NCBI RefSeq assembly: GCF_037042905.1
Contig: NC_087247.1
Span: forward strand, 20,026,001 to 20,090,000
DNA: 64,000 nt
Origin: Lytechinus pictus
Taxonomy: Eukaryota
Reading direction: 5' to 3'
The translations under genes were made by a program, and so were the position numbers. The notes below the pieces were generated by a model. That model had not been told where the DNA came from. It worked only from the letters and a program-made list of their open reading frames with translations, and ran no database searches. Shown here piece by piece: positions 40,671 through 49,550 of the stretch (the first letter of the stretch is position 1; each line of letters begins with the position of its first letter).

Positions 40671-43600
40671 TGAGGTGTTGATTTGGTTTTTTTACTTACA
40701 CGGTAGTTTGTCCAGGATGTGGATTATCGATGTGGGATTTTCTTTTTTTTTGTAAGTGAAAGCTATTTTAATTTTGTGACTGACGAGGTATAAGCCCTCC
40801 ATAAAAGAAAAACGTGTAGTGTCTCCATCAAATCAACAATGCAGCCTTTCAAGCAACAGTAAAAGTACCAAATTATTATCCTTTATTACTCCCCAAAGAA
40901 CATTTCCGTTTGCAAATAGCATATTTGTAAATTCAAGCATGAATATCTTATCTTATTAACATTAGAGAAGCCCTTACATATTTTGGAAAAGTTTTTTTTT
41001 TATTCTCTGCATATGTATATTCTAGGTCTTAACCATTTTTTTTCATAATGTTAAGCATTATGAATATTTTTATGTCATTTCATACATTACAAATATCCCA
41101 GAAATAAATGTATTAAAAACTATAATCACTGAAGTTTTTTTAGTGCCATCGTATAATAAACAACTAAAGGTATATAAAGTTATGTATAGAAATATGAGGA
41201 GACACAGGAAAACTGCCCACAGTTATGACAGCGAACCGCTCTGATTCAGTCTATATAACAACACCATGATGTATAGAATCAAGTTATTTTGAGAGTGAGA
41301 ATGAAGAATGAAAATTGAAATCAATGGCTGATATTGACTAGCCTGGGGAGGCCCCTTCGATAATGTCTTGTCATCAATCAAATGAAACACGATGTCTTCC
41401 GTGCGTGTATCCTGAAAGTTATATAGTTCTGCTTTCTACTGAACTTTTCCGTCATAAATCAAAGCTTACCGAGAATAAAGAAAACGAAGGAATGTATAAT
41501 GTTAATCCGTGAATTGGGTAATTACTGATCGAAATGATTTATGGAAAATCCTTAAATATGCTGACTATATAGTGTTTTTCAATCCAATGCATATCTGTCT
41601 CTTTGGGTGTGTCTCTCTACATATTTAAGAAAACACTTTAAAGATTTCAAAAGACTTACAGACGATTATTTCCAATTTTTGGATACAAACAATGACTTGT
41701 GTTTATTCCTTATATTCAGTCAATGAACTGATAATCCTTCTAAAAAGAAAGGAATTGTTAAAAATGGACTTGTCGAAATAGATCAAAGTCCCCCTTTTGT
41801 TTTTGGTTTGTCAGAAAATTTGAGTAACGGGTAACGACCTGTTTTCTTTCAGTCCCTCTCTTTTTCCTTTATTTTTTATTTTGGGGGGGGGAGTGTCTCG
41901 TCCGAAAGGGTTGCCAACCCCTGACAAGGTATGCCATGTTTGTTACAGATCCTATGATTGTGAGATCACTATTTTAGTTAAACTTATATGTTCATTCTCA
42001 CTATACGATTAGAGAACCTGAGTGAACCCCCGAATATGAAACTATTATCATGATTATTAAACAAATAGAGGAGAGAACGAGGTTTGACAAGCGTATTGTG
42101 AAATCCAAAGACAAATTTATTTTTAAACTTAAAGAGAGGTGACAATTGCCTGTATATCAGCTGCACATTCAGTTATTGTTTTATGACATAATTAGCGACG
42201 AGGAAAGGGAATCTACCATGATTTACCATGAGTGAGCTATAAATTTTTAAGGGTATCTATTTATATTCCCTTGATTCTTTCATGAGCCGATGAGTGTAGA
42301 CGCCCGATTAATCCTCGGGAGACCAAGGGGTCTTAGAACAGTTGAATGTTGAGGGAAAATTGTAGATTAATCTGATCCGAGACACAGACGCATGATCCGA
42401 AGTAAATTACCTCTCGCATGATGTCCTGTACTCACAGAAATTCGAAAATCCATCCCTCGATTAAATCCGTTATCATGGTTGCTATATAAAGTCTTATTTC
42501 CCCAAAGATTAGTAACAAAATTTAAGTCACAATCTAGGAATTATTAAGGTCTTTGGAGAATGCAAAGTCTATAAATCGGCAGTCACTGGGGTTTATGTAT
42601 GTATAATAAAAAATATATGTATAATGTCATTTGCATGGTATTTTTTTATTCACCCCTTTTCAAGTTTTATTAACTTTTACCATACAATATTGTCTTTTGC
42701 GTGTACAGAAATTCTACACAAGATAAATATTCTATCGATTACTACCGAATTGGTGAGCATTATTTTCTTAAATGAGGCCGCTTCACGACTGAAAAGATAA
42801 ATGATAAATGTATAGGACACGATTGCAATTATGAGAGAAAAGAAGAAGGCCTTTTATATTATGATGGCCATCAAGAATTTAAAGAAAAACCATACAAAAT
42901 AGAGACAAGAAATTGCAAAAACAGAATCTTACTTGGATTGCGAAGTTCTATGCGATATTGTTTTCGTTAGATTTGCAGTGCGAATTGCTGCAAGGCGTAA
43001 AGATGCACTAAAATGAACGTTTTTCCGATTTGGTAACGTGATACCACAGTCATTGAAATGGCAAATTTTCCACTACTCCAGAAAACTAAGCCATTAGGAT
43101 TTCAGCCTCCTCTTTGTAAGTTTTACATCTTGGATTTGATAATGTATGGTATCTTTGAAAGACAAATATGGCCTTGAATGGATCTTATTTGGAAGACACC
43201 TTGTACGGTGTACGCCTACATCTGGTAGAATAATAGAAAGATTGATCCGCCATTGAAACAGATATTCTAGGAAGCAAGGAAAACGGACTAGAAAAAAAAA
43301 ATGAACGTGTAATTCTATATCCGTATTATTTTCTGAAAGGCTGTCCCAAAATGTTTCATGCATTCAGATAATAGAAAATCAATATACAATGACTTTTGAT
43401 ACGGTGAAAATGTTGTTTTTTAACTGTATAATTGATTTTTTAAATCCTTATGCAAATTTCTCTCTAATTAAATATCGCAAAAAGAACGATGTGACCCAGT
43501 CCCATCATTGTGGAGAAATTGATTTAATAAGACATGATTCAGGAGTTTAGCTTGGCTTGGTTATGTTCTTGCGTGAAATGTTTTTAATATAAACCGGTGA

Positions 43601-43689
43601 AAAGTTTGGGAAAGGAAAGTTTGAATTAAAGGGGGAAAAATAGCTGCAATAAAAATAATCACGGAAGAAAGATCCTGAAAAAAAAACAT

Positions 43690-43998
43690 CAAGGAGAAGG
43701 AAAAGGAGGAGGAGTAGAAAAAGAAAAGAAGAGAAAGAAGAAGAAAAAGAAGAGGAAGGGTAAGAAGAAGAAGACAAAGAAGAAGAAGAAGAAAAAGAAG
43801 AAGGGTAAGAAGAAGAAGAAATAGAAGAAGGTAAGAAGAAGAAAAAGAAGAATAAAGAGAATGTAAACGGAGAAAAAAGAAGAGGAGAAAGAGGAAGAAG
43901 AGGAAGAACAACAACAACAATAAGAACTAGAACAAGAAAAAAAAAGAAGACGAAGCAGAAGAAGAAGACGGTAATGATGATGAAGAGTAGAAAGAAAA
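43690..43998. repeat. (GAA)n-rich polypurine tract
   Basis: Direct reading; source of the Leu/Phe/Ser-rich minus-strand ORFs. Confidence 0.95.
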
Positions 43999-44499
43999 GA
44001 TCATTATTAGATTTATGGTTTTATAAATGTGACGGTAAAAATGAAAGAGCACAAGAGCACTACGCTTCCTGGATGATAATCATCGAACCTAGTCCCTAGA
44101 CATTGTATGATGACGGGTATTGATGGACTTTGAGGCTTGCTATAACCAATCGAGGCAATTTGGGGGAGTCTTTTCCATTTCAAAACAACAAAATGTGAGG
44201 AAATATGAGATGCATCTAGCAGGCGACAATGACAGTTTCGATCAGGCTTGAGGCATTTATCTGTCATAAAGATGATGAGCCGTTAAGGTTTTATACAAAC
44301 TTTATAAAGCTCTATGGTGATGCTGATTAAGGAGGAGTCTACGAAGGGATGGAGTGGTAGGGAGTAAATAAAGGGTGAAAAGCATATGAGCTGTGAAAAT
44401 AGAATTCAGAAATAAAAATCTAATGCTTGATAGAGACCATATACTTCATGATAACGGCATGGACCTACGATTACGGTAACCATTTAGAATTTTAAAAAT

Positions 44500-44970
44500 G
44501 ACTGGGCGTTGAGGTGTGCGCCTGTAATCCAAGCTTCATGGGGAAGTATAATGTGGAGGATCGTGGGTTGGAGCCCCGATCATGTCCTTGGGATGATGAC
44601 GGTAAAAGTCAGACCCAGGAATAAATAATCATATCCAATTGATACACAGTGGCATACAGAGAGGGCGGGCTTTCCGGGCTCCCCCCACATTTTTCACGGC
44701 CGAGAAAAAAAAAGGAGAAAAGGAAAGAAAGGGAAATAGAGAATGGTGAAACATGGTATTATTTTCTGTATATTATGTCAAGATTTATCACAAATTTTGA
44801 TTTTGTAATAAAAATGTCGATTTTATTTTCGCTCGCTTTATTCGTTTGCAACTTTTTATTACAATTTTCTTGATACCCAATACCTGGCTCCTTCAAAATT
44901 GTTGGCTCAGTACGCCACTGTTGATACACGTCTGTAAAACTCAATCACACACACGCACACCCACACACAC
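44500..44970 (+). mobile_element. Chimeric SINE: 7SL(Alu-domain)-like head + B-box-like motif + MetaSINE-like core + (CA)n tail, interrupted by a hAT MITE
   Basis: GACTGGGCGTTGAGGTGTGCGCCTGTAATCCAAGCT..GGGGA..TGGAGGATCG resembles the 7SL 5' end; GGTTGGAGCCC (~44566-76); CCTTGGGATGATGACGGTAAAAGTCAGACCC (44586-616); sequence resumes after 44928 and ends in CA repeats. Confidence 0.65.
44647..44920. mobile_element. hAT MITE with perfect 8-bp target duplication
   Basis: TTGATACA(44639-46)|CAGTGGCATAC ... GTACGCCACTG|TTGATACA(44921-28). Confidence 0.92.
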
Positions 44971-48441: not shown

Positions 48442-49146
48442 CTTGGATGCTAATTCAGCGACATAGAAACACAATTTTATTAGAAGAAAGGGTACCAGTC
48501 GTCGCGTAGCTCAACGAACAACTATGAAAAGGCCTCCCAGGAATTCGCGTTGAAACCGCACCCCTTCCAGCATTATTTTGACAACCGGAATTAGACTTGA
48601 AATCGCGCTCTTTTTCAACCTTATACACCAATAGCTTCTTTGCTTGCTCTTGAGATTAAACTATCGAGGGTTTATATCGTTTATTTTTCGCCATTTTGCT
48701 CACTTGGCTCTTTTACACTCCGTTAAAGCGATGCCCATGGGTCGCGTACCCTCTTGACCCCCCCCCCCCCGGGCGCGGATCTAGCCTGATAAGACACAGT
48801 AGTTTTGAGAGACAGACTATAGTGCAATATCAATATGGCCTCTAAAATGATACTGTCTAATCCGGCGCTGATTGAAACTTTGATGAACAAGTGGATTTTC
48901 ACAAAAGACTAGCCCAAATACCTTCTGTACACAAGTCAGTGGCAGGGACTTTAGGGGCTGTATATTTAGGCCTTTCCAATAACTCGAGTATCAGGGTTAG
49001 TTTATAGCAAACTAGACCAGCCCACAAATTCAAATTGAACTAGAATTATGAGGATCAATCTTTAACATCACCTTCTGAAAGACCACGACCTATGGCCATG
49101 ATAACGGAGCTTTTAACCACGAACTTGTTTCTGAATCAGTCTTGTA

Positions 49147-49550
49147 CGGAGCCCCTGAGGTGACATGACGTTTTTTTCCTACATATACTCGTTCCTTCGA
49201 CTTATATCCCGACTTAATAACCCTTTCCCATGACTTACACAGTTGTAGTTGTGGGAACAGGTTATGTAAGTCGATAGAACAGGTTATTATATAAGTAGAA
49301 GGAACGAGTTATATAAGCCGATGGATCGAGTAATATAAGTCAACATCGAGAAAACGGGTTATCATATAAGTAGAAAGAATGATTTATAAGTTGAGGGGAC
49401 GAGTTATATAAGTCGAGGAAACGGTTTATTATATAAGTCCAAGAAACGTATAAAGTCGAGGAAACAAGTTATTTTAAGACGATCGAGTTAGTATTAGCTC
49501 GTAGGAACGAGTTGGGAAAGAAATAAATATCAAATCACCTTACTGGTTCT
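49147..49550. mobile_element. MITE with internal ~21-bp tandem repeats
   Basis: Starts TA|CGGAGCCCCTGAGGTGACATG; about a dozen degenerate TATAAGTCGAGGGAACGAGTTA units, inverted on the left arm. Confidence 0.7.

Follow-up and report, generated by a model that had tools for sequence, protein, structure and literature searches.

An ancient, interrupted copy of a dispersed sea-urchin SINE family with a 7SL-derived head

The window, that is, the whole stretch of 64,000 nucleotides under analysis (C3:20026001-20090000 of an 812 Mb genome), carries one SINE copy of ~180 nt, which lies at 44501-44646 and 44929-44970 and is divided by a MITE. Its features are the following:

44501-44547, plus strand: 7SL-derived head of 47 nt, equal to helices 2, 3 and 4 of the Alu 5' domain (placed by its matches to host 7SL, the family consensus and Rfam)
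within 44501-44547, plus strand: A-box-like GTGGCGTGCGCC region, with two loop mutations in this copy
44548-44565, plus strand: linker from head to B box, with a 6-nt deletion and several substitutions relative to the consensus; it contains TGGAGGATCG
44566-44576, plus strand: mutated B box GGTTGGAGCCC (family consensus GGTTCGAGCCC)
44577-44646, plus strand: SINE body up to the MITE insertion point, with the hairpin GTCAC...GTGAC and then the 5' arm of the predicted 3' stem-loop
44639-44646, plus strand: left copy of the target-site duplication TTGATACA, which belongs to the SINE and is single in uninterrupted copies
44647-44920, no strand assigned: hAT-type MITE of 274 bp with imperfect terminal inverted repeats (TIRs) CAGTGGCaTACaGAG and CAGTGGCgTACtGAG; related copies occur elsewhere
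44921-44928, plus strand: right copy of the target-site duplication TTGATACA, read from the window sequence
44929-44945, plus strand: remainder of the unique 3' tail of the SINE, in its old-subfamily form CGTCTGTAAAACTCAAT(C)
44946-44970, plus strand: degenerate (CA)n terminal repeat, from the window sequence and the alignment of copies

No convincing coding ORF was found between 38 and 52 kb of the window. Just upstream of the SINE, a CT-rich low-complexity stretch (43561-43920) yields a meaningless ORF of 119 aa.

The insertion that splits the SINE is a hAT-type MITE. It has the termini CAGTGG...CCACTG, its TIRs agree at 13 of 15 positions, the 8-bp TTGATACA stands on both sides of it, and uninterrupted copies of the family continue without a break across the insertion site. 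The initial annotation had read a hAT insertion with a TTGATACA duplication from the letters of the locus and had joined 44646 to 44929; the uninterrupted copies confirm the former and show that the join is exact. The MITE is itself multicopy, with relatives in the window and at four other loci (L024, L062, L064 and L075), of which the one in L075 is 1.4 kb long and has its own 8-bp duplication, CACGTCTG. It contains a run of five T.

DNA insertions within the same ~10 tail bases (TTGATACACGTCTG, SINE nt ~150-160) were seen in four of ~75 SINE copies (window 44639-44646; L075; L023:1654-1841; L076:1528-1700). Two of these four, in the window and in L075, are related hAT elements with different 8-bp duplications. 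This part of the tail looks like an insertion hot spot.

The head of the family is derived from the host's own 7SL RNA. The host has seven 7SL genes, scoring 272-283 bits, and the first 30 nt of the SINE are those of the host 7SL genes (30/30), with the SINE RNA starting at the same nucleotide as the host 7SL RNA. The letters GTTGTGGCGTGCGCC, in which the host 7SL genes differ from vertebrate 7SL, are carried by the SINE head. One host gene variant, L037 on C12, has ACT at its start and GGAAGT at nt 40-45, as in the SINE, and the helix-2 pairing is ACU/AGU in both, whereas it is ACC/GGU in the other six host genes. Over 47 nt, the consensus head agrees with L037 at 41/47 positions and the window copy at 40/47, the differences falling in the helix-4 loop; the window head and the consensus head share 42 of 47 positions.

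A 7SL-like head had been proposed from 26 of 37 identities between 44501-44537 and the vertebrate 7SL/Alu 5' end, a count that is correct, and the likeness is also recovered by Rfam. In detail, Metazoa_SRP matches the window locus with 36.3 bits (E 4.8e-7), which is below the gathering score of 70. A clean, uninterrupted family copy scores 29.6 bits (E 2.7e-6) over 47 nt, at model positions 1-44 only, and helices 2, 3 and 4 are all paired in its alignment. The portion of the window match at 44548-44694 is spurious, as it has low posterior probability, extends into the MITE and is absent from the clean copy. A weaker match to mir-1268, a family of Alu-like hairpins, reflects this resemblance a second time. 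Folded alone, the head forms helix 3, a four-base linker and helix 4 arranged as at the host 7SL start, with an MFE folding energy no better than that of shuffles.

The 7SL part ends at nt 47. The family keeps a complete 5' domain, made up of the U-turn linker, helix 2 in its closed form and helices 3 and 4, and local alignment to the rest of host 7SL gave no similarity past nt 47 above shuffles: the score was reached by 613-640 of 1000 shuffles for the consensus (p ~0.6) and by 132-155 of 1000 for the window copy (p 0.13-0.16), and a 7SL homology extending to about nt 100 was rejected on this basis. The 7SL 3' region and helix 5, and with them the full Alu domain of SINE1 elements, are absent from the family. 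Of the Alu-domain fold that the initial annotation had looked to in the consensus, helices 2-4 stand, being paired in the Rfam match, and a full domain does not.

Its continuation of the 7SL match into TGGAGGATCG (44554-63) falls as well. At that place the consensus has GCAGAGGTTCG and the older relative L095 has CAAAGGTTCA, the similarity is at shuffle level, and TGGAGGATCG is a chance outcome of mutation in the window copy, not a remnant of 7SL. A subfamily carrying the TGGAGGATCG variant was also considered and rejected, as a 24-mer around it, searched genome-wide with up to three mismatches, occurs in the window copy only.

The head could alternatively be a diverged tRNA-derived one, as in MetaSINEs, with a convergent or coincidental likeness to 7SL. 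The perfect tRNA-type B box and the T-arm-like stem that come after the head would agree with this, as would the tRNA heads described for sea-urchin MetaSINEs (PMC4824008). The data already contradict it, however, and leave it next to no probability: the identity with the host 7SL start is complete over 30 nt, the host-specific letters and the ACU/AGU helix-2 variant of L037 are present, the Rfam E-value is about 1e-6, and ARAGORN finds no tRNA in the whole window or in six family copies. On the question of whether the consensus head fits a tRNA better than host 7SL, which had been raised at the outset, the head is nearer to host 7SL.

In the family consensus (~180 nt in all), the 7SL-derived head leads into a linker and a B box; these are followed by a body rich in hairpins, a stem-loop at the 3' side, a short stretch of unique tail and (CA)n. 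The B box of the consensus, GGTTCGAGCCC, is a perfect tRNA-type box without a counterpart in host 7SL and lies ~45-55 nt past the A-box-like region. It is single in one subfamily, and an 8-nt duplication precedes it in another. The B-box-like GGTTGGAGCCC first noticed at 44566-44576 is a mutated form of this box, in which the essential C has become G. The body has the hairpin GTCAC...GTGAC and then a predicted, interrupted stem-loop of 13 bp near the 3' end, and no run of four T occurs in the consensus. Owing to the C-to-G change in the B box and to the run of five T brought by the MITE, the window copy is unable to make a full Pol III transcript. The short 3' end and (CA)n tail recognized earlier are present, 44946-44970 being CA-rich.

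A segment of the body may resemble the MetaSINE core motif, as the initial annotation proposed. No second family sharing this core was found in about 256 kb examined, except for one weak match at window 49051-49140. There, on the minus strand, lies a decayed element with the body-like motif GTCTTTCAGAAGGTGATGTTAAAGATTGATCC and a different front, which is single in the genome by BLAST; a genome search with 49030-49175 as query found only itself. This element may be what remains of an older, related SINE.

The family is multicopy, and not the single copy that had been allowed for at first. A search with 44495-44650 gave 149 candidates in the genome, and among the scored matches 39 others were 77-79% identical over the whole query. 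The alignment included 29 further copies with their flanks (L002-L030), fetched with the window copy as query. Copies are sharply bounded, starting with (G/A)ACTGGGCG and ending in a (CA)n run of variable length, and their flanks are unrelated for nearly all 29, only L015 and L018 sharing theirs. With up to three mismatches, a 42-mer across the linker and the duplicated B box has 705 matches and a 42-mer of the body 1,406, and the reversed-pattern control gave 0 in each case; young copies in the genome number at least ~1,400. Each 42-mer has more than 100 exact matches, so that part of the family must be very young.

The 7SL head is not confined to the copies found first. Among 20 body matches sampled outside the first list, 17 have the 7SL head with a single B box, and the remaining three (L056, L059 and L060) are 5'-truncated near nt 80, with unrelated DNA upstream. 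These three were also considered as a LINE; the unrelated upstream DNA identifies them as 5' truncations. All three are young copies and begin at SINE nt 79-83, just before the GTCAC...GTGAC hairpin, and this position may be a preferred stop of reverse transcription. No LINE with the SINE tail was found, the tail patterns that excluded the SINE body giving only truncated or indel-bearing SINE copies.

Target-site duplications, which the initial annotation had proposed to seek, are enriched about threefold over controls: exact direct flanking repeats of at least 7 nt are found in 19% of 59 full-length copies and in 5.7% of randomly paired flanks. Clear cases are L077 (about 30 nt), L009, L006, L021 and L051. 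That of the window copy is unconvincing, with at most about 5 nt. The dispersal, the short and variable target-site duplications, the variable (CA)n and the 5' truncations are marks of LINE-mediated retroposition.

Some copies have been carried along in larger DNA units. Five or more loci, namely L039 and L079-L082 (C18:1364626, C2:61992460, C4:9657048, C7:25357260 and C7:25365591), carry a SINE dimer, arranged head to tail, between flanks that are identical from locus to locus. An Alu-like dimeric SINE was rejected for these five loci, as their shared flanks place the dimers inside a larger repeat; L007 is an independent dimer, the second unit of which is 5'-truncated. A 34-nt fragment of the SINE tail lies in a block of at least 1.5 kb at L065, L066, L073 and L074 (C6:2.83-3.01 Mb), and this block is present four times in 180 kb, its copies being 94-97% identical. 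In the C10 cluster of 7SL genes, a SINE copy stops about 36 bp short of the 7SL transcription start, on its upstream side (copies at L031:877-1049 and 1290-1462, L035:1294-1466 and L036:1315-1466), where upstream 7SL promoter elements are expected, and the SINE-bearing unit of 413 bp is duplicated in L031. Near-identical SINE words are also contained in sequencing runs under three organism codes.

The dimers with identical flanks, the duplicated unit upstream of the C10 7SL genes and the four tail fragments in one C6 block would fit a spread that took place mainly at the DNA level, as a satellite or within larger duplicated units. Such copies are a minority, though. The almost entirely unrelated flanks of the 29 further copies (L015/L018 excepted), the threefold excess of target-site duplications, the varying length of (CA)n and the existence of 5'-truncated copies make a DNA-level spread very improbable as the main mode.

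The window copy shows 89% identity to the young consensus over the head, 75% over linker and body (with ~75% for the body at 44577-44646 itself) and 87% over the tail. In total, 136 of 166 aligned positions are identical (78% by BLAST with gaps), which corresponds to a divergence of ~18-22%. Its tail has CGTCTGTAAAACTCAAT- where the young family has CGTCTGACAAAACTCAAAT-. A 30-mer of this old tail variant has 28 matches in the genome with up to three mismatches, about 24 of them of the old type, and the variant is also seen in L095 and L096. Given the decay of the copies, this suggests an old subfamily of about a hundred or more members. The window copy belongs to this older subfamily, which is a minor one and has a tail variant of its own. 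It is an old, dead fossil and not a source element.

L095 has the old tail together with a decayed 7SL head, and three of its differences from the young consensus are in common with the window copy. Because L095 pairs the old tail with the 7SL head, the 7SL-headed lineage has an older layer in addition to a young burst. Further decayed copies with 7SL heads were met in flanks (L063, L098 and L100). On the other hand, L096, L097 and L099 are old, heavily decayed copies without the 7SL head, which may have been truncated or may be what is left of a parent family. We also considered a sibling family headed differently and rejected it, as 17 of the 20 sampled body matches have the 7SL head and these three copies are too decayed to discriminate.

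According to the literature, SINEs derived from 7SL are known only from supraprimates, hagfish and, since 2026, the shrew mole, and all those described kept both 7SL ends after a central deletion (PMC7245038, PMC13023118). SINE1 elements are defined by the outer regions of 7SL, both 5' and 3', which give a complete Alu domain including helix 5, and by a central deletion of about 183 nt. The sea-urchin family shares with them a 7SL head from +1 and is a dispersed, multicopy retroposon with target-site duplications. Since it lacks one of the two 7SL ends, we class it as a chimeric SINE headed by the 5' domain of 7SL and not as a typical SINE1. The independent 7SL-headed SINE put forward in the initial annotation is borne out by the host-specific 7SL letters, the dispersal, the target-site duplications, the variable (CA)n tails and the lack of a detected tRNA, and is narrowed to nt 1-47 of 7SL.

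The hagfish SINE1-1_EBu (Kojima 2020, PMC7245038) is likewise independent and non-mammalian, with a head from host 7SL. It is an apparent chimera of 7SL and an older SINE, and its LINE-type tail ends in a short terminal repeat and not in poly(A). It keeps, however, the full Alu domain with a central deletion, has a known RTE partner and comes from the vertebrate side, whereas the sea-urchin family keeps only nt 1-47, ends in (CA)n and has an invertebrate host. Alu, B1, FLAM-PB1 and Urop of the shrew mole, the SINE1 elements of mammals (PMC13023118), also start at 7SL +1, are of Pol III type, reach high copy numbers and share the H2-H3-H4 module that binds SRP9/14 in those elements. They consist of 7SL sequence only, with helix 5, a 7SL-derived B box, poly(A) and L1 as partner; in the sea-urchin family, the B box is of tRNA type, the body does not come from 7SL, and the end is formed by a 3' stem-loop and (CA)n.

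Parts derived from 7SL and from tRNA SINEs are also combined in Tu types I and II of the tree shrew and in GarnAlu of the bushbaby (PMC7245038). These are fusions of whole monomers that go back to a single supraprimate SINE1 ancestor, whereas in the sea-urchin family, of independent origin, 47 nt of 7SL stand in place of the front part of one monomer. Closest by host group are the sea-urchin MetaSINEs SINE2-1_SP and SINE2-2_SP (Nishihara 2016, PMC4824008), whose general layout, a head, a conserved body in the centre and a variable LINE-type tail, is the same. Described MetaSINEs are recognized by a 66-bp Meta-domain, 61-86% identical to the published consensus, and begin with a tRNA-derived promoter (PMC4824008), in contrast to the 7SL head without a detectable tRNA found here. 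The family may already be in Repbase or Dfam under a tRNA-SINE name.

A counterpart of the retained piece comes from human cells. There, a 5' Alu domain of 46 nt is bound by SRP9/14 and is enough to support one round of Alu retrotransposition (Moldovan 2024, PMC11760393). This minimal domain (nt 1-46) and the 7SL part of the family (nt 1-47) both end where helix 2 closes; the former is an engineered deletion of human AluY in HeLa, and the latter is part of a natural element from another phylum, known from sequence. An SRP9/14 mechanism is plausible for the family, by analogy, since the kept piece coincides with this 46-nt SRP9/14-binding domain.

The best explanation of the locus, to which we assign a probability of about 0.88 as a whole account, is a very old and inactive copy from a SINE family of Pol III type, together with the following putative mechanism. 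The family has host-7SL nt 1-47 as its head, and behind this head stand a linker, the tRNA-type B box, the structured body, the 3' stem-loop and (CA)n. The A-box region of 7SL and the tRNA-type B box would jointly drive Pol III transcription, and the 3' stem-loop with (CA)n would be the handle for the reverse transcriptase of a stringent-type LINE. The 47-nt module may bind SRP9/14 and carry the RNA to ribosomes, as proposed for Alu. The window copy inserted early, its B box was destroyed by mutation, and the hAT MITE split it at a later time.

The main rival to the SRP9/14 mechanism is a role as promoter only, in which the 7SL piece replaces the 5' half of a tRNA head and supplies the A-box-like element and the Pol III start, with no part for SRP9/14 or the ribosome. 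The distance of ~45-55 nt between the A-box-like region and the tRNA-type B box is the normal spacing of a type-2 promoter, and helix 5 of the Alu domain is absent. Moreover, stringent-type LINEs would recognize the 3' stem-loop, and ribosome docking may then be unneeded. On the contrary, the break lies exactly after helix 2 closes and the whole folded 5' domain was kept, not the A box alone; the head differences between subfamilies lie in the helix-4 loop and none in the stems or the U-turn; and in human cells SRP9/14 binds an Alu domain cut down to 46 nt (PMC11760393). A role confined to the promoter is a possibility that falls well short of an even chance.

The SRP9/14 mechanism bears on what a 7SL-derived SINE needs. 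Helix 5 strengthens the binding of SRP9/14 in Alu and, to our knowledge, is kept in all other 7SL SINEs. Two successive subfamilies in an invertebrate would have retained the bare 47-nt domain, and we tentatively suggest, at slightly less than even odds, that such a minimal SRP9/14-binding module is sufficient to favour retroposition, and does so via a non-L1 LINE acting on a stem-loop with a (CA)n tail.

In primates and rodents, no mobile elements have been more successful than the SINEs derived from 7SL, and we know of extremely few independent origins of such SINEs. None with a 7SL head has been reported from an invertebrate in the literature searched, and the echinoderm lineage would be the first outside vertebrates. 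The older layer to which the window copy's subfamily attests indicates that this 7SL fusion was persistent and not a recent accident. The natural 47-nt piece gives an evolutionary test of the part of 7SL that is important, in combination with what would be another class of LINE. If the proposed mechanism is true, ribosome docking via SRP9/14 would be a general route of SINEs to reverse transcriptase, beyond Alu and L1.
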